DNA of 64,000 bases from the sequence record OR805294.1; one strand, written 5' to 3'. This document shows, piece after piece, positions 42,640 through 63,427 of this stretch. Made by a program: the position numbers and the translations under genes. The notes under the pieces were generated by a model, which was not told where the DNA came from, made no database searches, and was given only the letters and a program-made list of their open reading frames with translations. The stretch's first letter is position 1. Each line of letters opens with the position of its first letter.

Positions 42640-42757
42640 GCAAATAAGACTAATTCTTATTTGCGTTTGTAATTTCATTTGTTATTGCAAATAAGACTAA
42701 TTCGTATTTGCATTTGCAACGAAAAAGAATATGCAAATAATAACTAATCTTATTTGC
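42640..42757. promoter_or_regulatory. cluster of three 25-bp palindromic boxes (Fur-box-like)
   Basis: GCAAATAAGACTAATTCTTATTTGC at 42640, variants at 42687 and 42733. Confidence 0.75.
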
Positions 42758-42931
42758 ATTTGCACTGCCTAGTATATGGATTGGTAGCATACTTGGAAAT
42801 GGATAGTAAATAAGTAGTTGATTTGTTTATAAATTATACTTCTACACCATACAGATTGACCTTGCTATATATAGCTCGTGCGCGCGTATACAAGATGGTA
42901 AAAAATAATTTAAAAATATTTTAAAAAATGC

Positions 42932-43055
42932 TTGACTTTCCATTACTACGACCTTAAAGTGCGAACTGTAGACGCAGTGTGTAGAGCGCTACATAGTAAG
43001 CAACGCAGAAAGTAAACAAAAAATGCTTGACGCAATGCAAACTAGGCTCTACACT
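42932..43055 (+). promoter_or_regulatory. tandem strong sigma70 promoters
   Basis: A/T UP element + TTGACT-17-TAAAGT and TTGACG-17-TACACT. Confidence 0.8.
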
Positions 43056-43138
43056 GTATACAAGCTTAAGGGGTAGGTGCCCCGAAAGTGTAGTAAGTAA
43101 ACAACATAATCCTTCCATCAGCTACAGAGGTATACAAC

Positions 43139-43843
43139 ATGTCCGTACATATCACTCGTCAACGTACCGACAAACAGCACGTCCTGGCACTGGCAATCAA
43201 CGGTGTGGTCATCGGCCAGACTATGGCTACCTACACCACCCCGAGCAAGCGCACCTGGTCGGCGACCGCCGAAGTCGAACTGGCAGACGGCACCGTCGTA
43301 CAGTTCGAGCAGAAAGAAGTGTTCAGCGCGATCCGCATCACCCGCGAAATCGAGCAGGCGCTCGACGGCAAGGAACTGGCGGCCAAGTACACCCCGGAAC
43401 CGAAAGTTCCCGGGCAGAAGGGTCCGAAACCGCTCACCGACGAAAGCCGGCTCAGCAACGCGATCGCGATCGTCAAAGCGGCCATCACCCACACCGGCTT
43501 CGACGAAGCTACCCTGGTGTTCGACGGGGTCGACAAGGCCAACTTCGAGCAGAACAGCACCTCCGTCGGCAACAAGCTGCGTCGCCTGGGCTTCGTCTTC
43601 GAACTCGGCGCCGGCAAGGCGAACAGCGGCAAGGGCTTCCTGATCAACCGCAAAGCGCAGGCCGAGGCAGAAGCTGCCGAACGCAAGGCCAAGCGCGACG
43701 CCGAGAAGAAGGAACGCGAAGAAAAAGCGGCGGCTGCCAAGCGCGAAGCTGACGAACGCAAGGCCAAGCGCGAAGCCGAACGCGCCGAAAAGGTCGCTGA
43801 AAAGAACGCAGCGATCGCCGGGGCAGCGCAGGAAAGCAAGTAA
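43139..43843 (+). CDS. GC-rich early protein with K/A/E/R coiled-coil tail; paralog of 61964..62422
   Basis: AGAGGT RBS; all 11 Ile codons are ATC; shared NGVVxGQ...xFSAIRI domain; terminator at 43859-43886. Confidence 0.9.
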   Translation: MSVHITRQRTDKQHVLALAINGVVIGQTMATYTTPSKRTWSATAEVELADGTVVQFEQKEVFSAIRITREIEQALDGKELAAKYTPEPKVPGQKGPKPLTDESRLSNAIAIVKAAITHTGFDEATLVFDGVDKANFEQNSTSVGNKLRRLGFVFELGAGKANSGKGFLINRKAQAEAEAAERKAKRDAEKKEREEKAAAAKREADERKAKREAERAEKVAEKNAAIAGAAQESK

Positions 43844-44770
43844 TTGCCCAACTGCGCCAGAAGGGGAGCAATAGCTCCCCTTTCTTCATGACCACACAAT
43901 CTATATACTACTATGTCTTTAACTATATTTTCTATATCAGCTAATTTGTATACAATAACTTGGTATTCTGCGCAACTGACACAATGGTGTTATATAGACA
44001 TAATAACACGCGACGCTAATATTTTTATAACCTATCCATTTTATAATAACATATTTGTATCTAAAATTAGTTCTAATACAATAATTGAAGAAAAAATTGA
44101 AGAAAAATATGAACACTATATTAGAGATATGTCGTGGAATAAGAAATGACTATATAACAGTCAATAATTTTACATATGACTACTATCTAGAGGTAAACAC
44201 ACCTGCGTTTTCTTTAATGATAATTATTCCGACAGTTCCTATATTAGACAATACTTGCATTACTTTTATAAAAAAGTATTAATATGAATATATTCTTTAT
44301 ATCAAACGGTCTATCTAATATAATATATCATAGAGAGTATGATACACATATGATAGATATTGAGATTAATAATTCTACTGTTATTTGGCTTACATATTCT
44401 TTCAGTGTTGCTAAGGTATCATTTAGATATATTACCTGATTCGTTTTCTTATTGTATGAGTTGCAATTGCAAATTACTCTTATTTGTAATTACATATAAA
44501 CAATCAGTTGCTATTAAAAGTATTTGCTGTTAATATACTATATAACAGTGCAATTGATATTTTAAAATACAGTGTGCAATACATCTTACATGTATTAAAA
44601 TTTGTGTGTTACTTGTTTTGCATTAATGATTAATATACCTCTCTTACAGTACAAAACTCATACTATATACAATTTGTTCGGGCGATCGTTCTCGAAAAGT
44701 ATACAAGTGAGAGATAGCAATCTAATTATACTTGTTAGTTTCTATATAGAAGGTTCTAAATATAGAAAAT

Positions 44771-45076
44771 TTGTATATAACAAAGAATACCTCAAAGGGA
44801 TTTCAGCATATGCAAACAACAATCGTTAATGCCCTAAAATCTATTAATGTAAAGTATTCGGATATATTTTACACAAATGGTAATTTGTGTAATACTGTTA
44901 CAATACGAAATATTCGTAAAAATGGTAAATTAGATTCGGCAGAACAAATTAATGTCGAATCAGTTGTGAGCAATTATTTGATTCAAAAAGATTTAAATTT
45001 GCCCTTTTCTATTCAGTGGGCAAATAATGATTGTTGCGAAGAGTATACTACACTTATTCTCTTCTTCAGAAAATAG
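44771..45076 (+). CDS. hypothetical protein (start probably 44810)
   Basis: AAGGGA RBS before ATG 44810. Confidence 0.65.
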   Translation: MYITKNTSKGFQHMQTTIVNALKSINVKYSDIFYTNGNLCNTVTIRNIRKNGKLDSAEQINVESVVSNYLIQKDLNLPFSIQWANNDCCEEYTTLILFFRK

Positions 45077-45249
45077 TGTATGATTAGATTAAAAAGATAT
45101 GTTCAATTGCATAGCATATACAGATTGTCTTACTATGCGCACGGCATACATTTTAGCAAAACAAAGAATATAATGCTTTACGTAGGAAACGCAGGTCCCG
45201 TACCCGTAACATGACAGTATATAGCGTTAAAATGTGCATTTTTTGCACG

Positions 45250-45369
45250 ATTTTGCGGGGTATGCGTTACAAGCAATACACACATACTGCTTTTAAAATG
45301 CATGCTTACATGCGCTTTGTAGGGGGTTTAAAACATGCTTAAATTAGTTACCACTGTGCTATACAACGT
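45250..45369. other. GA/TC-free island (120 nt; 155 nt allowing one GA)
   Basis: hand scan. Confidence 0.75.
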
Positions 45370-45547
45370 CTGTGTAGCTTCGTTAATAATGATTGTGTTT
45401 GTATGTGGTATAAATTTAGTAATGTATATAGATAACAATACTGACAATAATCCAGTTGTTATCTTTATTTCCCTTCTATCGGTTATTTGGGGCGTTGCGC
45501 GGTTAAGCTATATGTTTGTTACTATCCAATTTCAGTCCAAGAAATAA
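45335..45547 (+). CDS. small membrane protein
   Basis: two hydrophobic segments. Confidence 0.55.
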   Translation: MLKLVTTVLYNVCVASLIMIVFVCGINLVMYIDNNTDNNPVVIFISLLSVIWGVARLSYMFVTIQFQSKK

Positions 45548-45562
45548 AAGTATTGGTAACAT

Positions 45563-45904
45563 ATGATAGATAAAAACGGAAATACAGAAGACTTTGATTT
45601 TGATAATGCATGCACTATAACCGATCTGCCTGTGCCTCTTCAGCAAAAAATACAATCATATAAATTAAATAAAATATTGGTTATGGTTGCAATCCTTAAA
45701 TATTCGAATATAAAACAAGAAATTGGATGTTTCGCTATCATATGGGATCATATAATAAAAATAACGGTTGAAGTAAAATGCAATCCGTATGCAGAAACAC
45801 ACATACTCATGCATGCGCATGTATTTTCTAATTCCGATTCATGTACTCATAGTGTATTGCTGAATTACAGAAACAAATATTTACCCACCAATTATTATAA
45901 TTAA
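45563..45904 (+). CDS. hypothetical protein
   Basis: ORF in operon. Confidence 0.6.
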   Translation: MIDKNGNTEDFDFDNACTITDLPVPLQQKIQSYKLNKILVMVAILKYSNIKQEIGCFAIIWDHIIKITVEVKCNPYAETHILMHAHVFSNSDSCTHSVLLNYRNKYLPTNYYN

Positions 45905-45905
45905 T

Positions 45906-46313
45906 ATGGAAGATATTCTTAAAATTGCTAAACTAATCGGGTACGTAAACATACATGCAAATAAACATTTTCGGTATGTTTTTAACAAAGATATGGAACA
46001 TGTATGTGTTAGTGCCAAGACTAGGACAAGTATGAACGGAATAAAATACCTTTATGTAGTAATGAATATATATTATATATATTGCCAGCAAGAAAGTGTT
46101 GCCGTTATATTAAACGAAGTAAACACTGATGAAATGCCTGTATTAGACAATCTTTATGCTAAACTTAATGATTTAGTTACACATAAATCTATTATAAAAT
46201 TTAAATATACAGAAATAACACAAGAACAAATAGATTTGTTGAATAATAGTGAAAGATATATAGTATATTTTGACTCTTATTTAGAAGAATACGGAATAGC
46301 TTCGTTTTATTAA
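45906..46313 (+). CDS. hypothetical protein
   Basis: ORF in operon. Confidence 0.65.
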   Translation: MEDILKIAKLIGYVNIHANKHFRYVFNKDMEHVCVSAKTRTSMNGIKYLYVVMNIYYIYCQQESVAVILNEVNTDEMPVLDNLYAKLNDLVTHKSIIKFKYTEITQEQIDLLNNSERYIVYFDSYLEEYGIASFY

Positions 46314-46326
46314 TTTTGAGGAATAT

Positions 46327-46524
46327 ATGAAAAAACAAACAGGATTTACAGATTGGCCATTGATTAGTTTGGGTACAATTATTATCTTGTGTGTATGGGT
46401 ATTAATTCTACAATACACAGAAATAAATGTACTAGAAGAAAAATGTAACAAAGTAGGTGGTATTTTTAATAACACCGTTTGCATACGGTCAGATGCAATT
46501 ATTAACTTAGATAAGGTAAAATAA
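46327..46524 (+). CDS. small protein with TM anchor and C-terminal Cys pair
   Basis: GAGGA RBS; EEKCNKVGG...C. Confidence 0.7.
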   Translation: MKKQTGFTDWPLISLGTIIILCVWVLILQYTEINVLEEKCNKVGGIFNNTVCIRSDAIINLDKVK

Positions 46525-46525
46525 A

Positions 46526-46783
46526 ATGCCAAAACTTTACGTTAACAAAAAACATGATACCATTTATCTTCAATTAGATCATTTCTCATCTAATACTGTA
46601 TCTCCAATTAATTATAACGAAGATGTAGAATATGTAATTGATAGGGTCCGTAGTCTGCACAAATCCGGCTTCGGATTTAGTCATATGAATACTCTACAAG
46701 AATATCTTACGGCAAGAACAGAGCAGGATAAGAAGTTTAAGCTTAAAGTAGAAGACTTCGAAGTAGTATCATTTAAGATTTAA
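46526..46783 (+). CDS. hypothetical protein
   Basis: AAGGT RBS. Confidence 0.7.
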   Translation: MPKLYVNKKHDTIYLQLDHFSSNTVSPINYNEDVEYVIDRVRSLHKSGFGFSHMNTLQEYLTARTEQDKKFKLKVEDFEVVSFKI

Positions 46784-46804
46784 AATTATACATAATCAAA
46801 GTAT

Positions 46805-46833
46805 TTGACATTTGATGTGTATACTAGTATAAT
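46805..46833 (+). promoter_or_regulatory. perfect sigma70 promoter driving an ORF-free transcript
   Basis: TTGACA-17-TATAAT. Confidence 0.9.
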
Positions 46834-46839
46834 TTGCTC

Positions 46840-47570
46840 ATGCTGTCGTAACAGCTACTTTGTTCCATTCACAAGCAGCTCTGTTCCATTATTGGATATT
46901 GGTAGTAGAAACTATCCCCATCGTGCCCACAGTATTGTTCTGTTAGAGACAGATTAAAGCATACAAAAGTGGGTTATTTAAATTATGATTTTGGGTGCTG
47001 AAGTATAGTCGTTAGACAAGGATATGTCTAATGTTGCAAAGGACTATGCGAAACGTATTATATATCTTATCCGATAATAGATATGTAATAAAAGGATGAA
47101 GCTCTGGTAGAAACAGAGTGTAATTCTTGCTTGTATTTCGCACGGATATACAAAAGAATATACACACCAACTTCAGCATTGATGTAAATTTTCTAGCATA
47201 GGTATATAACATCGATGTTCCGGGATTCATTGGAAACAATGAGAGAATGATGTAATCTGAGGAAAAAGGTCCCCGCCTCGTCCATATTACGAAATGGTTT
47301 TGAGTACTTATGCCCTCGTCCTATATTGGCATATGGGTTTTATATTTCTCCCGTAATTACGGGAGAATATAATTTCCTGAACCTACTTGGAAATGGACGC
47401 TTCTGCTGTGCAAAGCACAGCATCTAAGGGCCTTCACCCTTACCGCTAAGAGCAAGAGCAAAAGCAATATAATTACAAATAAGAATTAATTATTGTTTAG
47501 TTTTATCGTAATGAATATGAAGATAAAAACTAAACAATAATTCACATGTAGCGTTAGCTACTGTGAATAT
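46840..47570 (+). ncRNA. candidate large ornate ncRNA C (~600-730 nt)
   Basis: consensus promoter, no + strand ORF, more than 12 helices including long-range TGCTGAAG/CTTCAGCA. Confidence 0.75.
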
Positions 47571-47699
47571 CTACTATAGTATTAACCATATATGTATACA
47601 AGGGCATAATATGGCTGTTACTTGTTGACAGTTTGATATATGTGTTACACTGCATAAATCAAATGTACATTACAATGTTTTGATTATTAGGAACATACT

Positions 47700-48290
47700 A
47701 TGTCATTTTCTTTGACTGCTGCTATTAATCGATATACTAGTCTAATAGAAGAAAATTTCAAAATAAATTATCTGAAGAATTTTGCGTCAGGATATATCTC
47801 ATATAAATTACTAAGAAATAAAGCACTCCTGCATACTGAAATATCACATGGACGTGATTATATAAAGGTAATTATTTCTTATACATATGTAGAAAATAAT
47901 GTTGAATTAGATATAAAATCATCTATTGTACATTCGTATATTTCTACTACTGATTGCTCTAAATTTAAAGTAGGAGATATAAGAACGTTTTACGATTCAG
48001 TTCCTCGTGGAAATGTTTTTAATATTAAAGAGAATACTCAAGTTAGCTGGTCAACAGCTAATATTGGAATTTACGAGAATCCGTTTAATCTTAATTATAT
48101 CTCGAACAATAAGTATATTCGATTAGAAACAGGAGATATATTTGTCTGTATTAATGACAGTATGGTAAATGAACTACAAGAACATATGCATGTTCATTCT
48201 ATATGTACTAACAAAACAAAGAAGTTTTATGTAAAAGAAATTGATTTAAACATGCTACATTACAAAAACACATTATGGAATAAAGAATGA
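47700..48290 (+). CDS. hypothetical protein
   Basis: 196-aa ORF, AGGA RBS. Confidence 0.75.
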   Translation: MSFSLTAAINRYTSLIEENFKINYLKNFASGYISYKLLRNKALLHTEISHGRDYIKVIISYTYVENNVELDIKSSIVHSYISTTDCSKFKVGDIRTFYDSVPRGNVFNIKENTQVSWSTANIGIYENPFNLNYISNNKYIRLETGDIFVCINDSMVNELQEHMHVHSICTNKTKKFYVKEIDLNMLHYKNTLWNKE

Positions 48291-48835
48291 ACTACAAAGC
48301 ATTAGAAGTATTTTATTTCTTTCTAGAACATTACAAGGTAAATCCAGTTGCCGACTTGGAATTTAAATTCGAACCCTCGGGTAGTGATGATCAATCTAAG
48401 CGCAAGTCATCACTGTCGTTTGTTAAACGCATTGGTGTTCTTACTCCTTCATTTAACGAATTATACGAAGTTCAGAATCGATTCATGACAGATCTTCGAG
48501 AAATGAATGTAGTATATAAGATAGGATTTAATTATAATGCATTCAACGTATTAGCACCTTTGTATGCAAGATATGAAAAGAATGTAAAAGAATTTCGTCG
48601 ACTTTTAAAGAAATACTCAAGTTTCAACGAAGTAACAGAATATTACAAAAAAGCCAACAATATGTTACCGGACAATGTATACGAAACAATGAAGGAAGAT
48701 TTTTCATTGTTTAATGACGTTACTACAAAGAGGTTATCTGAAATAAAACTTTGTTATCCTAATTGGCAAGTATGGGATTCTGAACATCCCAACTGGGAAA
48801 CAATAAATCAACTTTATAAGAATGCAAAGAAATAA
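48287..48835 (+). CDS. hypothetical protein
   Basis: 182-aa coupled ORF; terminator at 48846-48873. Confidence 0.75.
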   Translation: MNYKALEVFYFFLEHYKVNPVADLEFKFEPSGSDDQSKRKSSLSFVKRIGVLTPSFNELYEVQNRFMTDLREMNVVYKIGFNYNAFNVLAPLYARYEKNVKEFRRLLKKYSSFNEVTEYYKKANNMLPDNVYETMKEDFSLFNDVTTKRLSEIKLCYPNWQVWDSEHPNWETINQLYKNAKK

Positions 48836-48963
48836 TGCATATTTAGAAAGGGAATTATAATTCCCTTTCTTTTTGGATCTATATTAGCAAATGCTAATTA
48901 ATCTTATTTGCACAAATTTAATCCTATTGTGTTTTCTATTTTGAAGTGCTACATTACATGTAG

Positions 48964-49551
48964 TTGCATAAAACTATATACAGGAGAAATGATATGTGCT
49001 ATGCATGGGATATCAAAGACGGGGATGATATCGAAGTCGAAGCAGTTATGGATGAACGAAGCTATGAGTGGACCGGCAAGTTACGTATCATCCAGTATCG
49101 GACCCTTCAATCAGCTCAGTGGCGGGTTATTATCAATATAGTAGAATTTTGGAGTCATTTAACTGAAAGTATATTGAACGAACTTGGCATAGAAGCTAAA
49201 CACATCACTAAAGGATATGCCACACTTAGTATGGTTCGTTTCCCGGATGTTGATTACCTATTTAGTGTAACACCCGATAATGCAGATTATGTAACTGTTA
49301 ACCACAGTGCAGTAGATATTTCTGACAGTTGGTTTGTTGCAAAAAATATAAAAGCAGTTATGTATCACTTGGGATCTGAAATCCAGATCACTCCGTGGTT
49401 TGTGCGTAAAGATAGTAGTGAGTCAAACTTCGATTGTATTGATCGATTAGTAGCTCTAGTAAAAGAGAATACTGATGTTGACACGTATCAGTACATCAAA
49501 GTAGGTTGTCCTCAAGACAAGTCATTTTACTTTGCGTGGATAGACAAATAA
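48964..49551 (+). CDS. hypothetical protein (start probably 48989)
   Basis: AGGAGA RBS. Confidence 0.75.
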   Translation: MHKTIYRRNDMCYAWDIKDGDDIEVEAVMDERSYEWTGKLRIIQYRTLQSAQWRVIINIVEFWSHLTESILNELGIEAKHITKGYATLSMVRFPDVDYLFSVTPDNADYVTVNHSAVDISDSWFVAKNIKAVMYHLGSEIQITPWFVRKDSSESNFDCIDRLVALVKENTDVDTYQYIKVGCPQDKSFYFAWIDK

Positions 49552-49640
49552 TTCGTTTGCTATACGTACTAATACGTTGTATACTGTTAGTACGCATAGT
49601 AGAAGTAACACATAACGTTTTGATTTAATGGAGCCTTAAC

Positions 49641-49892
49641 ATGAAAGAAGAATTTGAATCGTGGATTCGGACTCGTTCTTCAGCGCCGCTTGCGTATAAT
49701 GCAGTCGACGACTTGTACCTCAACCCGCATGTTCAGGCACGCTACGAGGCTTGGAAAGCCAGTCGTGTGGCACTAAGGGTAGTGTTGCCGAAATCCCAGA
49801 TGGCGTTAGATTACGCGCCCAAAACAAAAGTTTTCAATACAATCGACATGGAATTGGCCCTCCGGCAAGCCGGAATAGAGGTGAAGCCATGA
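49641..49892 (+). CDS. Pseudomonas temperate-phage-like hypothetical protein
   Basis: EEFESW ... YEAWKASRVALRVVLP pattern; GC shift. Confidence 0.7.
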   Translation: MKEEFESWIRTRSSAPLAYNAVDDLYLNPHVQARYEAWKASRVALRVVLPKSQMALDYAPKTKVFNTIDMELALRQAGIEVKP

Positions 49893-50098
49893 AGACATTT
49901 TTGAAGATGCTCGCATATTGCGTGCTTGGGACATCCATTGGCATTGCCATCAGCCAATGGTTCATCTTCGTCCTAGAGATGAGGCTTGGCGCCGTGCTCT
50001 GGTACATCGTTGGCCTTGGTCCTGTGCTGCTTGTGTTTTGCATTTTGGGCAGCTTCCTTCAATGGCTGATTCATAAGAACTTGGAGAAAAAGCAATGA
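49889..50098 (+). CDS. small membrane protein
   Basis: ATGA-coupled start at 49889; two TM segments. Confidence 0.7.
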   Translation: MKTFLKMLAYCVLGTSIGIAISQWFIFVLEMRLGAVLWYIVGLGPVLLVFCILGSFLQWLIHKNLEKKQ

Positions 50099-50169
50099 CC
50101 GACCACGCAGAGCTGCGGAGGCTGGCTAAAGAAGTGATCCGAATTGAACGAAATGAGGATGCAGCATGA
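50095..50169 (+). pseudogene. 24-aa remnant MTDHAELRRLAKEV...
   Basis: ATGA-coupled at both ends; start typical of Ead/Ea22-like genes. Confidence 0.5.
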
Positions 50170-50681
50170 GCATTGACTGGAGCAAGGCACCAGAGGGCGC
50201 GACTCATTGGGAGCCAACAGGACTTGAGTTCAATGAAAGATGGATGAAGAAAGAAGGGAATGGCTGGTTCTTTTGGGGGCTAGGTGCAGAATGGAAATAC
50301 GGGGGTGATGTATCCGCAGAGCGTGAGGCGACATTCGAGGCTAGACCGCAAGAGGCCTGGGACGGCCAGGGTCTACCGCCGGTTGGCCTGATGGTGGAGT
50401 GGAAGGCAGGCCTTGATCACGACTGGCAGCGCGTAACCGTGCTTGCCTACGCCAATGGCGACGCGTGGTTTCAGCCCGAGGATGGCCCGTCTTTCATCGT
50501 CGGCAACCCGGCAAACTTCAGGCGTATCCGCACCCCCGAGCAGTTGGCCGCCGAGGAGCGGGAAAAGGCGATTAATCAGATGATTTCTGATGCTGGATAC
50601 GTAGATCCGAAGATTGGCACATTTGTGGCTATGCGCAATCTCTACGACGCCGGCTACCGGCGCCGGGAGGAAGGGAAATGA
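50166..50681 (+). CDS. Pseudomonas phage hypothetical protein (IDWSKAPEGATH family)
   Basis: MSIDWSKAPEGATHW ... WDGQGLPPVG ... FRRIRTPEQLAAEEREKA. Confidence 0.8.
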   Translation: MSIDWSKAPEGATHWEPTGLEFNERWMKKEGNGWFFWGLGAEWKYGGDVSAEREATFEARPQEAWDGQGLPPVGLMVEWKAGLDHDWQRVTVLAYANGDAWFQPEDGPSFIVGNPANFRRIRTPEQLAAEEREKAINQMISDAGYVDPKIGTFVAMRNLYDAGYRRREEGK

Positions 50682-50944
50682 GCAGACTGACAGCTGAGCA
50701 AGCCCGTGACATAGCGCGAGCGAAAGACGATGTCGATACTATCCTCAACGACATCGCCAAAACAGCCGCAGAAGGAAAGTACGTGTACACTACCCGCGCC
50801 TATGGGTTCGGCACAGGCGGCGGACGGCGCAGCGACGCGATCCTCAAAGTGTTGCGTAGCCTCGGCTACGACTGTGCGGTGCATGCTGAGGGACGCCAGT
50901 CTGTCGACCTGTGGCTTGAAGTGAAATGGGGAGACAAGCCATGA
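50678..50944 (+). CDS. hypothetical protein
   Basis: coupled GC-rich ORF. Confidence 0.75.
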   Translation: MSRLTAEQARDIARAKDDVDTILNDIAKTAAEGKYVYTTRAYGFGTGGGRRSDAILKVLRSLGYDCAVHAEGRQSVDLWLEVKWGDKP

Positions 50945-51360: not shown

Positions 51361-51384
51361 TGGTCTCCACGTAGGACACGCAGA

Positions 51385-53094: not shown

Positions 53095-53456
53095 ATTAAT
53101 GAACATCTTAAAACATATATATTGGGCTGTGCGTTATGGTGATTGGAATATAGGATGGGATCCGACTTGGGGTAGCAAACCTGATGAACCTTTTATTTGG
53201 TGTAAGCCGATATATTATGACGGACATCATTGCTACCTGCGAGTAGGCTACTTTTGGATAGGAGTAACATACTAACATTTACAATATATCTATAAAAGAA
53301 TATATCAGTAACACAGTTGTTAAATTGCAAACACTAATTAATCTTATTTGCATTTGCTATCTTGTATAATAGAAACGACTTCTAAACATGGATATGAGAT
53401 GGAAAACTTAGATAGGATCTCTGTTACAAATTTTTGAGTTACAATACATAGTAGTT

Positions 53457-54218: not shown

Positions 54219-54325
54219 GAAAAAGAAGCAGGAATAATTCCTGCTTCTTTTTCATATGTTACAAGTTAAACAAGATTAATTTGCATTTGCTATGTAATAA
54301 TATTTTCTATTGAATTAAATATTAC

Positions 54326-54562
54326 ATGTGTTACTATATGCACAATGCTGTTAAACAAAGCGATAAATTAATAATTATGGCAAATAAATTACATATCATC
54401 TGTGCAAAATGTGGTAGCACTCTTATAAACATAAAAATACCAAAGGTATGTGCAGATGATCCATTAAATGTAGTATATTTTTCGTGCGAAAACTGTAAGG
54501 AACTTACAGGCATATACGAATGGGCAGAAACAAATAATCGCAAAGTAGTTGACGATAGGTAA
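54326..54562 (+). CDS. zinc-ribbon protein
   Basis: CAKCGS ... SCENC. Confidence 0.6.
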   Translation: MCYYMHNAVKQSDKLIIMANKLHIICAKCGSTLINIKIPKVCADDPLNVVYFSCENCKELTGIYEWAETNNRKVVDDR

Positions 54563-55170: not shown

Positions 55171-55239
55171 TATAAAGGGGGAATAATTCCCCCTTTATTT
55201 TTCTTTTATAAACATAAATAATTCGCATTTGCACCGAAG

Positions 55240-55369
55240 ATGCTTTATAACGCATAAATTTACATAGCTAATACATACATATTGCTAACGTTAAAAAGCG
55301 CGTTATATAGCTTATAATTGCATATTGTGCAATGCATTTGTTGGTGTTATATTAAGTATGCGCAACAAT
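55240..55369. other. GA/TC-free island (130 nt)
   Basis: hand scan. Confidence 0.8.
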
Positions 55370-55696
55370 CAACTATACAAAAACATTTATTATGGAGATA
55401 CAACAATGAAAAATACACTGTGTCTCGTTGCATTTTTGGGTCTCACAGTAATAGCTCATACCTATGCAGCAGATTCTGCAAATAAAGATGTGAGCACCCT
55501 CATTATGGAACAGGATCTAGAAACATATCTAAATGAAGAGTTTGGATTAACAGGGAAAGTTAATTGCAATAATGCTGTTAACGGAATGTTCGAGTGTGTC
55601 ATGCACGACGGACAAAAGAAATACATGTTTGCATGTAATGCAGAAGACAGTGTATGCATAGTTGTATCTGTCCCGATTAAAGGAATTCGGTTATAA
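55325..55696 (+). CDS. secreted protein with signal peptide (start probably 55406)
   Basis: GGAG RBS; MKNTLCLVAFLGLTVIAHTYA. Confidence 0.7.
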   Translation: MCNAFVGVILSMRNNQLYKNIYYGDTTMKNTLCLVAFLGLTVIAHTYAADSANKDVSTLIMEQDLETYLNEEFGLTGKVNCNNAVNGMFECVMHDGQKKYMFACNAEDSVCIVVSVPIKGIRL

Positions 55697-56055
55697 AAAA
55701 AGCTCTTTCAAGTGTATTAGGTATCATTGTTCTGTTACTAGGCGTATTTATGGTAGATAATCCTACAATAGGATTAATGCTAGGAGGGTTAGTAGGTAGT
55801 TATATTTTCAGCATAGGCGGAGTAATTCTATGTGTTATATCGTTTATGATATTTGCACTTGCCTTTGTTGAGATGAAATGAATAAATGCATAAACAGGTA
55901 CTGTATAAAAATAAAGAAAGATTAGATTTTGTCTGTAATAGTTATATATTTTTCAATGTAATATTCTTCATTTTCATTGCATGCGTTACAAAATAGATCA
56001 CAAAAAGTTTTAAAATTCAGTTTACAGCATGCATAGTTTTACGTATTATAAACAC

Positions 56056-56360
56056 ACAAAGCAATACAGCATAACGCATTGTAAGCAACACTAAACGGGA
56101 GACACCGTCCCGCAAGCAGCCCGCCCGCGATGTTCGCGGGCTGCGGCAAACAGGTGTACAAGGTCTAGTAACGTGGAAGGCGCAGCATACCTTTCCCTAA
56201 ATCGGAAATCGGTCAATGACGTACCTGCCCCTGGACACTGCTAGACCTTGCTGCTACAGGCGGGACAGCTACAAAGGTACACTGTATGTATCTATGCTTT
56301 ACCCCGCTTTGTAGCAGGTCTTAAAACGGTCTACTGGCATATGCCTTAGTGCTAGTAGGA
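56056..56360 (+). ncRNA. candidate GC-rich structured ncRNA D (~300 nt)
   Basis: TTTACA(56021)-17-TATTAT promoter, no + strand ORF, 9-12 bp helices. Confidence 0.7.
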
Positions 56361-56819
56361 ATCATTAACCTAAAACTATTATATGCTTCCTGGAGGTGAA
56401 GAGTATGCCGCCGCAGCATTAAATATACATTATGATGATGATAATTATGAATGCCGAAACACCGCTTCGATTCGTTTAAAAGACAGATGTCTGAATCGAA
56501 TGTTTTTGGGCAAAAAGGTCCCTTAGATGGGATTTTTTTGCGGCTGTTAACTAGCAAACGCGAATTAATCTTATTTGCAATTTAAGAAAAATACCAGTTG
56601 ACTGTAGCTTGTTAACATAGTACATTTAACTCATAAATCCGCAGGAGTAGCAGTTATGTCGCTGAAAAAGAAACTTTTAAATTCTGTGCAGATTAAATAT
56701 TTCGGCAACATTTATACTTACATTTATGATGCCGTTCATGACGTTATTTATTTCGATAACCAGCAAATGTCTTATGCCGAATTTGAAGAGGCAGTAGACT
56801 GTAAGCTAGGAGAAGTTCT

Positions 56820-57095
56820 GTGAATGAATATGTTGATACACACAGAGCTAAAAGAATACTAATAATTTCTTCTATATGTTTTTTTGTAACTGGCATTCTG
56901 ATAGGATACAGCCTAGCGTCGAATTCTGAGTCTGCTTCGTTATATATGCAGTATAAGGAACTTGTAAAGTCTTGCGAAGCAGAATTGCCAAGAAATGAAA
57001 ATTGCCAAGTAATCGTATATGCTATACCAACACCCGAAGTAGAAGAAGAGAAACTAGAAATACAAACAATTCTTAGAGGGGTCGAAATAAAATGA
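56820..57095 (+). CDS. TM-anchored hypothetical protein
   Basis: AGGAGA RBS, GTG start. Confidence 0.7.
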   Translation: MNEYVDTHRAKRILIISSICFFVTGILIGYSLASNSESASLYMQYKELVKSCEAELPRNENCQVIVYAIPTPEVEEEKLEIQTILRGVEIK

Positions 57096-57328
57096 GCGTA
57101 TACTGTAATTGCATAGCATGCGGTGGAGATGATCCGTATGCTGTATGTGAAAATGTGTTAATGGATATCCAAAAGCACAAATATAATACTGGTCCCAGCT
57201 GGGGGCTGGTAGTTGCGGCAGTATTGTGTTTGGTAGGAATGGGATTAGCAGGTAACGCAGCACTATCTGATAAAAAAGAAACACCGTGCGAAACTACACA
57301 ACAAAAACAAGAGGTGTATAATGAGTAA
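57092..57328 (+). CDS. hypothetical membrane protein
   Basis: coupled ORF with one TM segment. Confidence 0.65.
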   Translation: MSVYCNCIACGGDDPYAVCENVLMDIQKHKYNTGPSWGLVVAAVLCLVGMGLAGNAALSDKKETPCETTQQKQEVYNE

Positions 57329-57527
57329 CAAAACAACAGACATGCTGGTAGATGAATTTCTGTGCGAGCGTGCATCTTTTTCTCCGTTTAGCGAAGGTGT
57401 TCATGCAGCTAAACTAGGGCAGAAATATACAGACTGCCCGTATACCAAAAATGAGCCGTATGAACGTAACGAATGGATTCGAGGACATCAAATGTGGCAT
57501 GATTATTCTGTTCAACAATACAAATAA
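57321..57527 (+). CDS. RMF/CrpP-fold (ribosome modulation factor-like) protein
   Basis: FSEGVHAAKLGQKYTDCPY...RNEWIRGH vs RMF QRGYQAGIAGRSKEMCPY...RSQWLGGW. Confidence 0.65.
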   Translation: MSNKTTDMLVDEFLCERASFSPFSEGVHAAKLGQKYTDCPYTKNEPYERNEWIRGHQMWHDYSVQQYK

Positions 57528-57542
57528 TATTCAGAGGATATT

Positions 57543-57746
57543 ATGAAGAAACTATCTATGTGCGATTTTGCCAAATGGAAGGCAAACTATTACAGCACTA
57601 ATAAATCCGGTCAGCCACTCCGGCTAGGACAAGCATTTATTAACGAATTTTCCGAACAGGGTGATATGCCTCAGCCAAATCTATATTATGAAGAAGATAA
57701 TGCAACTGCTGAGCTTATCATTCTAGAAAAATACATTATGTACTAA
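57543..57746 (+). CDS. hypothetical protein
   Basis: GAGGA RBS; LRLGQAFIN. Confidence 0.75.
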   Translation: MKKLSMCDFAKWKANYYSTNKSGQPLRLGQAFINEFSEQGDMPQPNLYYEEDNATAELIILEKYIMY

Positions 57747-57756
57747 GGAAGTAGTA

Positions 57757-57951
57757 ATGTATCTTGCACACCTATTCGCTTTGGTCCCGTCTATGTTTGC
57801 AGTATTAATTAATGCTATCTTTATTAAATACGGTTTGGGACCTGCTTCTATAATAGTATTTATGGCCTTAGTTGTAACTGTAACAGGAATTGGGTCTGTA
57901 ATAGATATGATGCGTGCATTGTCTGAAGTAGACAATATTATTGATAGATAG
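57757..57951 (+). CDS. small membrane protein
   Basis: two TM segments. Confidence 0.65.
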   Translation: MYLAHLFALVPSMFAVLINAIFIKYGLGPASIIVFMALVVTVTGIGSVIDMMRALSEVDNIIDR

Positions 57952-58276
57952 TATTTATGTATGCATAAGAGAACTTATGAAACTCAACGAAGTTACTACA
58001 ATTTCTGATCTAGACAATATTCCTGTCACTGACAAATTTATAGTTGTCGGCGAAGATATGGTAGGTCTTGCTTTTATCGATAACGATGGAAAGTTAAATG
58101 ATGGATTCTTTTTTGAGTGTACTTATACTCAGAATAAGGAACAAATATTTAAAGCTGTTCAACATTTAAAAAAACAAGTAGATGAATTAAATAATTGTAA
58201 TAAAGAGAAAGTTATAGCACATATCATGCGAGCTCCTGAGTTTGCATATGTTTGGGTATACTTTGAACAAAAATAA
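57941..58276 (+). CDS. hypothetical protein
   Basis: ORF in operon. Confidence 0.65.
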   Translation: MIDSIYVCIRELMKLNEVTTISDLDNIPVTDKFIVVGEDMVGLAFIDNDGKLNDGFFFECTYTQNKEQIFKAVQHLKKQVDELNNCNKEKVIAHIMRAPEFAYVWVYFEQK

Positions 58277-58558
58277 TAGTTCTATATTTTTTGATATATG
58301 CAAACGCAAATAATTAGAATTTGCAGAACCTGTTACAAACTTTCTGTTTATATAAAATACAATCATGCTATAATAGTTTATAATAAAAATGTAAGCATAT
58401 AGCACCAAAAGAACAAAGATGAAGTTCATTCTTTGTCTAAAGATTAAGTTTGCTGAGAATTTTGATAAGAAACTTCAACTGCTAGATATTATATCAATAG
58501 TGCATTTATCATGCATTGAACAGAAAAGAAGTACTCTTTTATCTACGAGGAAAAGCAA

Positions 58559-58774
58559 ATGAAATACAAAATCATTCTTCAAAACCGTAGCAATGGTGTT
58601 GTCGCTGAATTTTCGGTAGATAACGAAATTAACCCCGAGATCATGGATACTTCTATTATTGTTCATGAAGGGACATCGTATATGTTTACTGGCCAGCGCG
58701 GTTCTTACTACGATATCCTTTATTTTAGTGAAATATATAAGACTATTAACACGACAGACTTGTCGTTGCTATAA
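58559..58774 (+). CDS. hypothetical protein
   Basis: GAGGA RBS. Confidence 0.75.
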   Translation: MKYKIILQNRSNGVVAEFSVDNEINPEIMDTSIIVHEGTSYMFTGQRGSYYDILYFSEIYKTINTTDLSLL

Positions 58775-58847
58775 CAGAAAACGCTTTACAATAGCTCTAA
58801 ATGTGCTATTATGTAGTTGTACATAAAACAACGCAGGAGATTATATC

Positions 58848-59045
58848 ATGCGTAGCACACTCGGAGTAGAACATGCATCGAGAGAAATTCTTTCTGCATG
58901 GGTCGATGTAATGCAGCAACTCAACTGTGAGCATTTCTATAGCGAACTGAAAGACAATGCAGTTCGCTTAGATTTACAGGAATATATGTATACTGAACGT
59001 CTCGTTCAGTATTATACAGATCTTCCAGTCACTAATGCTAGTTGA
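58848..59045 (+). CDS. hypothetical protein
   Basis: AGGAGA RBS, TTTACA-16-TATTAT promoter, terminator at 59077-59105. Confidence 0.75.
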   Translation: MRSTLGVEHASREILSAWVDVMQQLNCEHFYSELKDNAVRLDLQEYMYTERLVQYYTDLPVTNAS

Positions 59046-59158
59046 TGCCTTCGCCGGGCGTGAACTACATTTATTAGGAAAGGGGTTTTAAGCCCCTTTC
59101 CTTTTGAATGTTAAGTGTAAGTGCAAATTAATCTTATTTGCTTGTTACAATTTAGTTC

Positions 59159-59677
59159 TTGAATTCACACATAATAGTATGTATAGTTTTAATATATAAG
59201 ATACAAACATACGAGGTTGTAAAAATGAAACTTCATAAAATGAATGGTAATATTTTTATTCGGTTTGAAGTAGATACTTCATCGGATAATTTTGTAGAAA
59301 AAGTTTACGAAGAAATTATGCAGCTTCCTGCAAAATTGTATTTCGAAAAGATAGAACGTAGAACTTGGTTCTGTAGCTTTTACACAGGCTACGACGAATT
59401 GGTGGAATTCGTCAATGAAATAAAAGACAGAGTTAGTTCAGAAGGTGTTTTCTTTGACAGGCCATTGCAGCTAACTCTTATCAATTCGGGCGGGGTAGAA
59501 GTAAATATTTCCGATATAGAACCGGATCTTCACTATCTCTTTGATAACGATATTACAACTACAAAACTTATCTCTATGGAAGGATCCTGCAATATGGTAG
59601 ATTTGCTCATGTGCGAATGGGTACCTATTAGCATTCGAACTTCTATTGCTAAGGCATTTACTGACAAATTTTTATAA
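59159..59677 (+). CDS. hypothetical protein (start probably 59225)
   Basis: GAGGT RBS. Confidence 0.7.
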   Translation: MNSHIIVCIVLIYKIQTYEVVKMKLHKMNGNIFIRFEVDTSSDNFVEKVYEEIMQLPAKLYFEKIERRTWFCSFYTGYDELVEFVNEIKDRVSSEGVFFDRPLQLTLINSGGVEVNISDIEPDLHYLFDNDITTTKLISMEGSCNMVDLLMCEWVPISIRTSIAKAFTDKFL

Positions 59678-59688
59678 TAAAATACCTG

Positions 59689-60417
59689 TTGACGCATATA
59701 GCAATATGCGCAATAATATGCACGAAAGCAAGAACAGATCCAAATAACCTTTTTATAAGAGATTATATTATGTCTAAGTATCTTTCTTTTAGCGTAAACG
59801 TAGACATGGACAACACTGGTCTGTTGAAATGGTTGCGTCCTACTACCGGTCGGTTGGATGGATTCGAAGAGAGTGTTAAAAACTTCGTTTCTTCTTTCCG
59901 CTCAGTCGAGTCGAGCCCTACGGTGTTTCAAGTTTACGATGACGATGATCAGCCGTTGCAAGTAAGCAACATGAGCTGCTTCTTCCGATACTTTCCGGTG
60001 TATGGTATGTGCCTTGCTCCGGGTTCGATGGTCAGGGACCAATATCGTCGGGAGATCCTCGACTATACTACTGACGAGTTCTGTTCATTCAGTAACTACT
60101 TCAGTGACGGCAAGGCCATCCGCGGCGGGGCAGTCTTGTGGTGGGATGTAGAGAAAGACTTGGTATGGTCTGTTAGTCCCGAATTGATTCGCCTCGTATA
60201 TGCCCGCTTGCAAAGCGATATGGACATCGGGTGGTATCATCTCGGGCAAGAAGTTATGGCTGTAGTTCCCCTTCGTTCGTATCCCAACGATGTTGCCCGA
60301 TGGAAATATGTACAAGGTAATATCTGCGGCATCGATGATCAAGTGAGCATTCGCAGCAATGTCGACGGTCGAGTCACCCGGCTTAATTGGGAATACATCG
60401 TGACCCAAGGGGGATAA
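59689..60417 (+). CDS. hypothetical protein (start probably 59770)
   Basis: TTGACG-17-AATAAT promoter at 59689; LWWDVEKDLVWS. Confidence 0.8.
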   Translation: MTHIAICAIICTKARTDPNNLFIRDYIMSKYLSFSVNVDMDNTGLLKWLRPTTGRLDGFEESVKNFVSSFRSVESSPTVFQVYDDDDQPLQVSNMSCFFRYFPVYGMCLAPGSMVRDQYRREILDYTTDEFCSFSNYFSDGKAIRGGAVLWWDVEKDLVWSVSPELIRLVYARLQSDMDIGWYHLGQEVMAVVPLRSYPNDVARWKYVQGNICGIDDQVSIRSNVDGRVTRLNWEYIVTQGG

Positions 60418-60418
60418 T

Positions 60419-60646
60419 ATGGGCGGCCTTGCTAATATAGTTGCATGCATAGCTTCTATTGTTGCAATTGTTACTGGAAATATCTGGTATTTTATCGCAC
60501 TGTTGCTATGCACAGCATTTATGTCGCCCGAACGAAAAGGATCATTAATTGATGTATTTTCGGTCATTGTCGGGATTGGTGCTATATTTAACGGAGACAT
60601 TGCATGGGGCATAGTGTTCATAGCATTAGTGATAATAGTTAAATAG
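60419..60646 (+). CDS. small membrane protein with internal repeat
   Basis: GNIWYFIAL / GDIAWGIVFIAL; terminator follows. Confidence 0.7.
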   Translation: MGGLANIVACIASIVAIVTGNIWYFIALLLCTAFMSPERKGSLIDVFSVIVGIGAIFNGDIAWGIVFIALVIIVK

Positions 60647-61502
60647 AAAGGAAGGGGTTAAACCCCTTCCTTTTATTGTAGGTGTTAAATGTCATCAATT
60701 TTTTATCTTAGCAAATGGACAGAATACATAGTAATTTTAAACAATAAGAGAATAAGGTTAAGTACAGCGAAATATTCTATAGGATATGTATCACTAGAAA
60801 CACCTCGTCGCACATTTTACTGGACACTTTTTAAATGAAATACAATAATCGTATCTAAATAGCTACCTACCTTTATATCAAAAACCATTCTATGAAATAT
60901 ATTTCCCAAATCATATTACAAAAGTTATATTTGAATTTTGGATTCTTATCTCAACCTTGCATTGCAATATAAAATGCGAATATGAGTGTGCTGTATGTGT
61001 TTGCATACGCATGTACATACGCATAAACGTATTAAGAAATACAATTTATTTTATCCTATACGATTATCTTTAATACCTATATGTTGTTTGATAATAAAAG
61101 TATAATAAGTAAAAGATATTATCCATTGTATAATGGTTTTAATATATTTCGCTGTAGTGTCGGATGTATATATTTTTCATATGATAAAATGTCATTTATT
61201 CACGACATATTCATGCAAACCGTTTCGTTATTCCTTACAACGTTATTAATGTTTTTACTTATAACTCCGTTATATCATATAGGATTGAAAAATCCAGTCA
61301 ATATAACTACATTTGTTTCGTGTTTAATAATAACCATTCTTATAACAAGTTATTATTTTATGTCAGTTTTGACTTATATATTCTGTATTACCGTTCAGTC
61401 AATAATTTATAAAAGAAAGAAATAATTTAGTTTCTTTTTCATTATCAATATCTTTTTCTTTTTCAATATCTTTTTCTTTATCTTTTTCTTTATCTTTTAT
61501 CA

Positions 61503-61617
61503 TTGCAAATACAAATAATAATTATTCTTATTTGTATTTGCGATTAATTCTTATTTGTAATTGCGATTAATTCTTATTTGCTACAATAGATAGAATAAGA
61601 ATAATTCACATTTGCAA
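61503..61617. promoter_or_regulatory. second cluster of Fur-box-like palindromes
   Basis: AATAATAATTATTCTTATT, 2x GCGATTAATTCTTATTTG, AATAAGAATAATTCACATT (61594). Confidence 0.7.
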
Positions 61618-61772
61618 TGCCGCTAAAAGCGCTGTAAGCGCTGTATGTTGCGTAGTAGTGCTAAGCAATGCGTTAGTACAGCTACGCGCACAAACGCTGT
61701 TATGCGCGCTTGTAGCGCGTTTTAGGGCCCATGCGCATGCGTATACCTGTAGCTTTACATAGTAAAATGCAG
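61607..61772. other. GA/TC-free island (166 nt)
   Basis: hand scan; GCGC-rich. Confidence 0.85.
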
Positions 61773-61963
61773 AAAAGACGTCGTCTATTAACGTGCCTGT
61801 CTTAATAGAAATATACAATTGTACAATACCAGCGAAATCCTACACACTACAGACATGCAAACAAGCAACGTGCTTGCAAGCATAAAAGTTTTTAAAAAGT
61901 AGTAGACACAGTGTAGCATCCCTAGTAAGCTACACACATAAACAACACAACGGAGTACAAGCT

Positions 61964-62422
61964 ATGTCTAATGTAAGCATCCCTGCTGTAACTGTAGAGA
62001 ACATCGGCACCCTGCGCATCGTGCGCACCGCTAACAAAGAGGTCGGAAGTGTGCTCGACCTAAAAGTTAACGGGGTAGTAGTAGGGCAAGCTTTCCCGCT
62101 CTACAGCACAAAAACCCAGCGTAGCTGGAACGCAAGCATGCACGCTACCGTTAACGGTGTAGAGGTGCAGTTTGCACAGGAAGGCGTGTTCAGTGCAATC
62201 CGCATTGCACGGGCGTTCGAGGATGCAGTAAAGTATGCCGTTAGCAACGGCGAACAAGGGCAACCCCTCCCCGCCCCGGCGGCGGCAGAAGCGCAAGCAG
62301 AAGCGCAAGCAGAAGCCCCGGCGGCGCAGTCCGACGAGGCGCCGGAGACCCCGGCAGCCGAAGCTAAGCCCGCCCGCAAAGGCGGCAGCAAAGGCGGCAG
62401 CAAAGGCGGCAGCAAAAAGTAA
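61964..62422 (+). CDS. GC-rich early protein with AEAQ/PA and KGGSx3 tail; paralog of 43139..43843
   Basis: CGGAG RBS; shared N-terminal domain. Confidence 0.9.
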   Translation: MSNVSIPAVTVENIGTLRIVRTANKEVGSVLDLKVNGVVVGQAFPLYSTKTQRSWNASMHATVNGVEVQFAQEGVFSAIRIARAFEDAVKYAVSNGEQGQPLPAPAAAEAQAEAQAEAPAAQSDEAPETPAAEAKPARKGGSKGGSKGGSKK

Positions 62423-62437
62423 GCGCTGCTAACACAG

Positions 62438-62550
62438 GAAAGGGGCAACTGCCCCTTTCCTTTTATGTCCTAGTTGTAAACGCAAATTAATCTTATTTGC
62501 ATTTGCACAAGTCAATCTCCGGTTGCATTACTGCGGTAAGATGTTAGTAT
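62438..62550 (+). repeat. 113-bp regulatory cassette, copy 1 (terminator + box + promoter)
   Basis: identical to 63315-63427 except at 2 positions. Confidence 0.9.
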
Positions 62551-62576
62551 ATATGTAGCTATACGGAGTAATTGCT

Positions 62577-62807
62577 ATGAAGCGCAAGTACCTAAAGGCA
62601 CAGTTCGAGCATGTCAGTGCCGGGCGAGTTGCAAAAGAACTCGACGAGAAGTTCAATTTCGTTGTAGGCGATAATGTACACTACTGGGCCATCTTCGAAA
62701 CTAATGTCAAACCCGAAGTTCTACAAAAGGCAATTCATGACATGAACGGTGGTGCTTACTGCCATGCATATTCTATTCCGTATGAGGATGTAGAGGAGTA
62801 TCTCTAA
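62577..62807 (+). CDS. hypothetical protein
   Basis: CGGAG RBS after the cassette promoter. Confidence 0.8.
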   Translation: MKRKYLKAQFEHVSAGRVAKELDEKFNFVVGDNVHYWAIFETNVKPEVLQKAIHDMNGGAYCHAYSIPYEDVEEYL

Positions 62808-63021
62808 TGCTCTACTATCGCGATGTTTATGCAGGTGTTTGCTGTTAAACTTGTATAGCCGGCACCAGGTCGCATATAACACGCCTAGCCCCATGCAAAC
62901 TGCGGACATGATCCATTCACGCCTGCAGCGTATGTTCGAAGAATTCGGTTGCAAGCCCGATGGTTGCTCTGCTAGCATGTACGAGGATAAGACGCACATC
63001 ACATTAGCCTGGAGCAAGTAA

Positions 63022-63312
63022 ATGGATATGTCGATTGTGAACAAGCGCTTCGAGAAAGAACTAGCGCTGTTTAATGTCGAAGTTCTCGGTAAGCGCACAG
63101 TGAATCATATAACGAAACCGAACATCGAAGTTTCGTTCAAACTAAAGGGTCATACTACTGAAAAAGAGATGACCACTGTTACTCAGCTCGCACGTCCCAT
63201 TATGGAGTATGTAAGCGGACGTAGGGTGGTCTGGGCACATACCGGTCTTTGGCGCTCAATGAAAGACGACCTCGAAGTAGCAGTGCTGACAATGAAGTTA
63301 TCCAAACAATAA
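63022..63312 (+). CDS. hypothetical protein
   Basis: GGAG RBS. Confidence 0.75.
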   Translation: MDMSIVNKRFEKELALFNVEVLGKRTVNHITKPNIEVSFKLKGHTTEKEMTTVTQLARPIMEYVSGRRVVWAHTGLWRSMKDDLEVAVLTMKLSKQ

Positions 63313-63314
63313 GA

Positions 63315-63427
63315 GAAAGGGGCAACTGCCCCTTTCCTTTTATGTCCTAGTTGTAAATGCAAATTAATCTTATTTGCATTTGCACAAGTCAATCTCCTGT
63401 TGCATTACTGCGGTAAGATGTTAGTAT
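63315..63427 (+). repeat. 113-bp regulatory cassette, copy 2
   Basis: see copy 1. Confidence 0.9.

Follow-up and report, generated by a model that had tools for sequence, protein, structure and literature searches.

Introduction

Cyanophages use PhoB and NtcA boxes, and the ferric uptake regulator, Fur, controls stx1 on a prophage. For phi29 p4 and SPO1 TF1, repeated sites at early promoters set early-to-late timing, and the TF1 sites lie in the terminal redundancy of SPO1. Here we describe a 27-bp palindrome that recurs at the early transcription units of Pseudomonas phage Ettore and resembles a Fur box. The stretch analysed, called the window below, has 64,000 nucleotides and corresponds at full identity to bases 124001-188000 of the Ettore record (OR805294.1); coordinates are those of the window, continued past its end where needed. 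The palindromes are confined to the early region, conserved among related phages, and have sequence in common with true Fur boxes. We find the element to be genuine and restricted to one part of the genome, and very probably it is an operator that binds a protein and is linked to early transcription units. Among the papers searched, none described Fur boxes at lytic-phage early promoters or this element.

Ettore is a jumbo phage of 288 kb and 33% GC in the genus Wroclawvirus (PA5oct-like; PA5oct/Paride-like). It is among the Paride relatives isolated on deep-dormant P. aeruginosa, and this small group holds the sole phages found so far to replicate in deep-dormant, antibiotic-tolerant P. aeruginosa (PMC10761892). 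In PA5oct, gp34-gp105 are early genes that are strongly transcribed 5 min after infection in lysogeny broth (LB), and the phage is dependent on the RNA polymerase of its host (PMC7318152). The PA5oct DNA that is homologous to the palindrome field sits within a direct terminal repeat estimated at 39 kb, and the published PA5oct analysis gives promoters and terminators only.

Results

The whole Ettore genome (288 kb) was assembled from fetched pieces and the position matrix of the element was then refined on it, with a site threshold of 12 bits. The full element is the 27-bp palindrome TGCAAAT-AAGAAT-T-ATTCTT-ATTTGCA. About 27 distinct sites exceed 12 bits, compared with 1-9 in Markov-shuffled genomes, and all except three weak outliers lie within 166.6-194.3 kb of the genome (42.6-70.3 kb of the window). 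All strong copies in the 288 kb are confined to this one 27.7-kb stretch, which ends 6 kb past the end of the window and corresponds to PA5oct gp34-gp105, the portion of the long terminal repeat that is transcribed early. The 13-mer core TAATCTTATTTGC has exactly seven exact copies, all on the + strand (42745, 48899, 53339, 56566, 59129, 62488 and 63365); when up to two mismatches are allowed there are 20 matches, against 7.4 +/- 2.5 in shuffled sequence, and none of 100 shuffles reaches 20. The initial annotation had reported two dense clusters, single copies of the core and three variants. Both clusters are present, the core is exact at every spot that had been listed, and the variants at 54.28 kb (54265) and 58.31 kb (58299) are real sites, whereas the weak variant at 47.49 kb does not reach the threshold. 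Its counts of 16 of 18 matches at 61594 and 15 of 18 at 42643 to the gammaproteobacterial Fur-type pattern AATGAGAATnATTCTCATT were reproduced; seven positions in the entire genome reach at least 15 of 18, all of them inside the site field. The absence of the element that it had noted from the first 42 kb also holds, the sole match there being a weak one of 16 bits at 35622.

The palindrome was also considered as an RNA hairpin. Folded as RNA, the sites have a mean energy of -4 kcal/mol, compared with -14 to -21 kcal/mol for the neighbouring terminators, and pairing between the arms is not preserved. Taken together, the weak folding and unpreserved pairing speak against the hairpin and indicate that the conserved feature is the DNA sequence.

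In the crystallised complex of Fur with the feoAB1 operator, the operator is TGCAAAT-N-ATTTGCA with TGCAAAT as its half-site, and the G of the half-site is read by Arg57 and the T's by Tyr56 (PMC4506495). The outer arm of the phage element is identical to this half-site, which is found in 16 of the 27 right arms and 7 of the 27 left arms. The 27-mer consensus can be parsed into F-F-x-R-R hexamers or, alternatively, into three 7-1-7 registers that overlap with a 6-bp offset; extended cellular Fur boxes, to which more than one Fur dimer binds, have this triple-register layout. The consensus thus has the architecture of a Fur box, with AAT-T-AAT in place of AAT-N-ATT in about half of the individual sites. 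To compare the element with cellular DNA, the skeleton GCAAAT-N3-AAT-N-ATT-N3-ATTTGC (25 nt, 18 fixed bases) was scanned against 185,579 species genomes (596 Gb). At least 120 cellular loci were found, mostly in Proteobacteria, against roughly 9 expected by chance, and their free positions spell the canonical GAT...ATC or GAG...CTC. Among the neighbouring open reading frames (ORFs) tested, in three Pfam batches, nine encode TonB-dependent receptors, which predominate among the neighbours; two sites lie directly upstream of fur genes, and other neighbours include iron-type ABC binding proteins, a PepSY_TM protein and a ZnuA/SitA-type protein. The phage right arm ATTCTTATTTGC is found at TonB-dependent receptor sites in L088, a Pseudomonadales metagenome-assembled genome, and in L069, and the phage left arm GCAAATAAGAAT at such a site in L046. 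The resemblance to Fur boxes is real and more specific than AT-richness. An iteratively refined cellular Fur matrix was dominated by sites selected by the pattern (122 of 138) and was used for the free positions only. A metagenome scan with the inner palindrome gave at least 119 loci, none with GC...GC arms among the matches listed, and was uninformative. No Fur homologue was detected among phage ORFs of at least 40 aa (best E 0.6).

The same comparison bears on whether the binder might be another host protein with a preference for AT-rich DNA, such as MvaT/MvaU, IHF or Fis. The P. aeruginosa host is GC-rich, at about 66%, and since the phage has only 33% GC its DNA will be met by AT-binding nucleoid proteins. 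These proteins have loose sequence preferences, however, unlike the motif, whose palindrome is long and well defined and has G and C at fixed positions. The closest cellular matches of the motif adjoin iron-uptake and fur genes. A protein of this class is therefore hardly credible as the dedicated ligand.

The typical order within a unit is a terminator, 8-20 nt, the palindrome, 16-21 nt, and a sigma70-like -35 hexamer. Twelve sites start 8-20 nt past an intrinsic terminator, and in eight units with a predicted sigma70-like promoter the -35 begins 16-28 nt after the site. The centre of the site falls at -65 to -69 for seven of these eight predicted promoters and at -80 for the other, so that about -67 is typical. 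The placement after a terminator and before a promoter that had been proposed at the outset holds for most of the single sites. The promoter-proximal half of the palindrome is the better conserved one (21 sites versus 4, p = 0.002), and the distal half usually consists of two tandem GCAAAT-like hexamers.

The clusters differ from the single sites in their spacing. Cluster 1, with three sites, and cluster 2, with four, lie 175-290 nt upstream of the next promoters (175-270 nt for cluster 1), and each is directly preceded by a T/C-rich array of 6/12-bp periodicity that may be a degenerate array of same-orientation hexamers. When the two cluster regions are aligned they have a common architecture and little sequence identity outside the sites. 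Tandem arrays next to T-rich low-complexity repeats, both inside the terminal repeat, could also be iterons of a replication origin or signals for DNA injection or packaging. Against this, some 20 copies outside the clusters are scattered across 28 kb, with one to each early transcription unit, and the repeats are inverted rather than direct; there is no DnaA-box match within 42-64 kb, and no turn of the GC skew was found at the clusters. An origin or packaging role is accordingly very unlikely.

Other sequence features were observed around the clusters and at the far end of the field. Locally GC-rich leaders (61617-61760 and 42870-42890) follow both clusters and precede the paralogous genes described below; they contain repeated short motifs with GCGC and have GCGTATAC in common. 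The 13-bp sequence TTGATAATTGGAT occurs 3.9 times in tandem at 66161-66211, equal to 26161-26211 of L002, a sequence that covers the field past the window end. Every unit of this array holds the canonical Fur heptamer TGATAAT, and the array directly abuts a palindrome site. In PA5oct an ORF annotated as 'extensin-like' spans the T-rich repeat array into cluster 1, and for this reason is probably spurious.

The set of sites is kept in PA5oct, Callisto and MIJ3, with 21-26 sites each. Between these relatives the sites differ at 2.3% of positions, compared with 3.6-4.8% in 100-nt flanks, which is modest evidence for conservation because the compared genomes are closely related. The number of sites in cluster 2 varies among related phages, and complete duplicated units lie at 62436, 63315 and about 64035. 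When Ettore was compared with the three relatives, 20 of 75 homology breakpoints fell within 40 bp of sites, where 4.7 +/- 2.0 were expected, indicating that the units also mark cassette junctions. The GC content is mosaic as well, ranging from 26 to 52% per 2 kb. These three observations, breakpoint enrichment, duplicated units and mosaic GC, would also be expected if the palindrome were mainly a recombination substrate, with units of terminator, palindrome and promoter marking exchangeable early-gene cassettes and with similarity kept by gene conversion in place of a dedicated binder. However, most sites have only the 27-mer in common and their flanks are unrelated; the agreement of the 27-mer with Fur boxes at about 18 defined positions is not explained by chance or recombination; and enrichment of breakpoints is expected of any intergenic element. 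Recombination as the main role of the palindrome is therefore improbable, and a part in recombination would be compatible with protein binding.

Among PA5oct, Callisto and MIJ3, homology breaks and copy-number changes in the equivalents of 42000-71000 fall at or beside palindromes. Within 42000-64000 the GC content is strongly mosaic for a phage of 33% GC overall, reaching 52% in the stretch 50-52 kb, 50% in 62-64 kb and 44% in 42-44 kb, and 143 bp near 49.86-50.0 kb match unrelated Pseudomonas phages at 87-96%. The mosaic composition, together with this match, suggests that early-gene cassettes were drawn from GC-richer sources.

Three paralogous early genes were identified in the field: a gp38-like gene, a gp86-like gene and a third at the equivalent of about 68.8 kb (L002 28829-29266). 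Each has one of the three arrays in which sites are densest shortly upstream of it. The first two are 48% identical over 61 aa (E 3e-16) and the third copy was found by phmmer; all have in common an N-terminal domain of about 65 aa, followed by basic, low-complexity tails that are Ala/Lys/Glu-rich or made of KGGS repeats. In PA5oct, gp38 is a virion protein. In the gp86-like coding region, two perfect 12-bp tandem repeats (62285-62416) encode a tail of Ala/Glu/Gln and Lys/Gly/Ser repeats, and their number varies among relatives.

The location of these genes raises the possibility that the palindromes serve a DNA-binding protein of Fur-like specificity as operators and that the phage itself encodes this protein; the three paralogues are the best phage-encoded candidates. 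Arrays upstream of three clear paralogues are the usual layout of autoregulated regulators, and the Ala/Lys/Glu-rich basic tails occur in all three. A virion protein such as gp38 could enter the cell alongside the DNA. The triplets that are commonest in cellular Fur boxes are missing from the phage motif, whose fixed right arm is its own, and a protein made by the phage might be suited to modified G. On the other hand, Pfam and PHROGs find no known DNA-binding domain in the paralogues, and these have no homologues outside Wroclawvirus, the search with the gp86-like protein having given orthologues only. The fold predicted for the gp86-like protein is of low confidence (mean predicted local distance difference test score, pLDDT, of 58) and has no significant structural match (best E 0.1, template modelling score, TM, 0.29). 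The clusters, at 175-290 nt upstream of the paralogue promoters, are not in operator position. The only gene in the field annotated as encoding a 'DNA binding protein' was also considered as the regulator and rejected, as it probably encodes a DenV-like protein instead (weak Pyr_excise match, below the Pfam cut-off).

Similar arrays are also present in other viruses, on metagenomic contigs that carry T5-like packaging genes. A skeleton scan of IMG/VR identified the related contigs L133/L139, L135 and L148, with T5-like terminase and portal genes and with 4-5 Fur-type palindromes each, beside strong consensus sigma70 promoters. In one instance a site begins 6 nt past a TATAAT, and in another an array adjoins a canonical AATGATAATCATT. 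Since these contigs were recovered through the motif itself, the frequency of the feature is not given by this sample. Recurrence of the arrays in a second phage group favours a shared host factor, which is simpler than a shared phage regulator. A phage-encoded binder, the main rival to host Fur, is possible but rather unlikely. A near-perfect site beside a Zur-box-like sequence was also seen on L008, a satellite-like contig of 57% GC. Strict-pattern scans of viral contigs gave 1-2 matches and no close relatives of the phage.

Several observations weigh against host Fur as the ligand. A published rule requires at least 14 of 19 matches to the classical box GATAATGATAATCATTATC (PMC6922518), and 24 of the 27 sites reach only 10-12 by this measure, which describes the classical box and not sites defined in P. 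aeruginosa. Three sites reach 14 of 19 (61510, 66209 and 68635), and about 3,800 positions of the AT-rich Ettore genome score at least 11 of 19. Of 54 phage half-sites none has GAT or GAG as its inner triplet, compared with 43% of the 244 cellular ones; the share of AAG is about 46% in phage sites but 5% in cellular sites, and no cellular site among those compared has AAG on both halves. Since the inner triplet is never GAT or GAG, the central 7-1-7 (heptamer TAAGAAT) lacks the G that Arg57 reads. The classical overlap with -35 and -10 is not seen at the predicted promoters, with 53326 as a possible exception. Expression of the genes is strong in LB, a medium in which Fur should carry iron. 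The unequal conservation of the two halves is not accounted for by a symmetric dimer on its own. Finally, PA5oct DNA resists EcoRI, XbaI, BsaI, BmrI and ApaLI, and the phage encodes 7-deazaguanine synthesis genes; those who reported this propose that G is modified in GA and/or GG contexts. The phage DNA probably carries a modified guanine. Fur contacts N7 and O6 of its G (PMC4506495), and a modified G would alter the N7 contact. The G of TGCAAAT, being followed by C, might escape modification.

A verdict against Fur from the classical 19-mer score alone was set aside, since the cellular scan shows that the extended skeleton is a genuine form of Fur box. The Fur interpretation of the initial annotation stands in part: membership of the palindromes in the extended proteobacterial Fur-box family is supported, and simple repression by Fur is opposed by the position of the sites, the expression in LB, the inner triplets and the probable modification of G. 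The alternative that the annotation named, operators for a phage repressor, corresponds to the phage-encoded binder considered above.

The features of the region are collected in Table 1. The unit at 48845-48973 directly precedes a homologue of PA5oct gp52, which has been shown by experiment to inhibit END nucleases. Small minus-strand ORFs are annotated in the Ettore record at 61600-64000, at 42247-43118 and at L002 28730-29152, for example over the 152-aa gp86-like gene. The + strand of the same stretches encodes proteins that are conserved and annotated in PA5oct, Callisto, MIJ3 and Paride, and the minus-strand ORFs look like wrong-strand calls. Outside the field, a cluster of tRNA genes (Ser, Leu, Met, Arg and others) is annotated at 10000-20000 in matching records. 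Rfam gave nothing credible within 40-64 kb.

Table 1. Palindrome sites, predicted transcription signals and neighbouring genes in the early region of the window (strand: + or, for sites, not assigned).
Feature	Coordinates	Strand	Details
Terminator	42501..42532	+	intrinsic; closes homologue of PA5oct ncRNA001, ~100 nt before cluster 1
T/C-rich array	42524..42635	+	direct repeats of period 12 and of period 42; flanked by the ncRNA001-type terminator and by cluster 1
Cluster 1	42639..42758	.	three strong 27-bp palindromes (42639, 42686, 42732); first two within a 47-bp tandem duplication
Two predicted promoters	42932..43055	+	sigma70-like; TTGACT-17-TAAAGT at 42932, TTGACG-17-TACACT at 43027; precede gp38-like gene
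gp38-like gene	43139..43843	+	234 aa; basic Ala/Lys/Glu-rich tail; first of three paralogues
Single site	44462..44488	.	predicted promoter 44508-44536
Weak variant	47473..47499	.	one good half only; <12 bits
Unit	48845..48973	+	terminator 48845-48870, site 48886-48912, predicted promoter 48941-48973
gp52 homologue	48994..49551	+	homologue of PA5oct gp52 (anti-END1)
Single site	53326..53352	.	no upstream terminator; TATAAT 13 nt downstream; may overlap -35 region
Unit	54227..54337	+	terminator 54227-54252, site 54265-54291, predicted promoter 54310-54337
Terminator and site	55172..55233	+	terminator 55172-55198, 8 nt, site 55207-55233
Unit	56517..56626	+	weak hairpin and T-run 56517-56539, site 56553-56579, predicted promoter TTGACT-17-TACATT 56598-56626, ATG 56656
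Site and promoter	58299..58374	+	site 58299-58325, predicted promoter 58347-58374 (TG-extended TATAAT)
Unit	59076..59187	+	terminator 59076-59105, site 59116-59142, predicted promoter TTGAAT-17-TATAGT 59159-59187
T-rich array	61431..61502	+	period 6/12; directly before cluster 2
Cluster 2	61504..61616	.	four overlapping or adjacent sites (61510, 61533, 61556, 61590), including a 23-bp tandem repeat
gp86-like gene	61964..62422	+	152 aa; paralogue of gp38-like gene; KGGS-repeat basic tail
Unit	62436..62550	+	terminator 62436-62461, site 62475-62501 (extra ATTTGC to 62507), predicted promoter TTGCAT-16-TAGTAT 62523-62550, ATG 62577
Unit	63315..63427	+	near-identical copy of the 62436 unit; terminator 63315-63336, site 63352-63378, predicted promoter 63400-63427, ATG 63468

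Discussion

From the sequence of the palindromes and their cellular counterparts we infer that they may be Fur-box-type DNA operators, whose likeliest ligand would be the iron-loaded Fur of the host, an assignment that we regard as evenly poised. The effect of binding can likewise be proposed from the position of the sites. With its centre about 67 bp upstream of the predicted start, the operator is too far away for plain promoter occlusion, and its position argues against plain repression. Fur bound there might instead modulate the early promoters through the upstream region and the C-terminal domain of the polymerase alpha subunit, and its input could be positive, or anti-silencing on very AT-rich DNA, or dampening. 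Bound Fur could also act as a boundary, blocking polymerase that reads through the preceding terminator. In addition, each repeat copy holds approximately 27 sites, a number that the terminal repeat doubles and replication multiplies, and together these might form a sink that draws Fur off host promoters. Modulation, boundary and sink would thus be candidate roles for Fur at these operators.

A broader proposal, which is speculative and rather improbable as a whole, is that strong early promoters are wired to host Fur in two or more unrelated lineages of lytic phages, namely the PA5oct/Paride-like jumbo phages and the uncultured phages whose packaging genes are T5-like. More than 50 operators per packaged jumbo-phage chromosome would then gate or boost early transcription by iron status, and replicated DNA would titrate Fur, switching on host iron uptake for iron-dependent enzymes of the phage; this might contribute to replication in dormant cells. 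Should host Fur be the binder, the region would show on a large scale how a lytic phage reads a nutrient sensor of its host, and possibly also how a virus titrates a global regulator. Should the binder be a phage protein, it would represent a new family of regulators that mimics a host operator. With either binder, the result would have a bearing on how iron availability might affect phages that are candidates for therapy. A defined operator at nearly every early unit, including that of a proven anti-defence gene, also offers a concrete and cheap experimental handle.

Of the known elements, extended proteobacterial Fur boxes are alike in being AT-rich palindromes of 25-27 bp with outer arms GCAAAT/ATTTGC and the core AAT-N-ATT, in having an extra ATTTGC repeat at some sites, and in the identical skeletons found upstream of TonB-dependent receptor and fur genes. 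The phage sites differ from them in the inner triplet, which is AAG, GCA or GCG and never GAT or GAG; in their position at about -67, after a terminator and not over a promoter; and in their setting, about 27 copies in a lytic phage whose DNA probably carries modified G. The units as a whole are comparable to the PeSL cassettes of T4-type phages, in which a terminator stem-loop and a sigma70 early promoter together separate the small early ORFs of a plastic region. As we understand the definition of that family, the Ettore units have its features, including breakpoints at the units. To our knowledge, PeSL cassettes have no palindromic operator between stem-loop and promoter, and in this the Ettore units differ. 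Repeated protein-binding sites upstream of or around early promoters are also found with phi29 p4 and SPO1 TF1; there the binders are phage-encoded and the sites are unlike Fur boxes. The closest parallel in regulatory logic is provided by the PhoB and NtcA boxes of cyanophages and by the control of stx1 by Fur, where a virus places sites for a host nutrient sensor before its own genes. In those cases one or a few genes are concerned, whereas in Ettore the sites accompany nearly every early unit of a 28-kb region of the terminal repeat.

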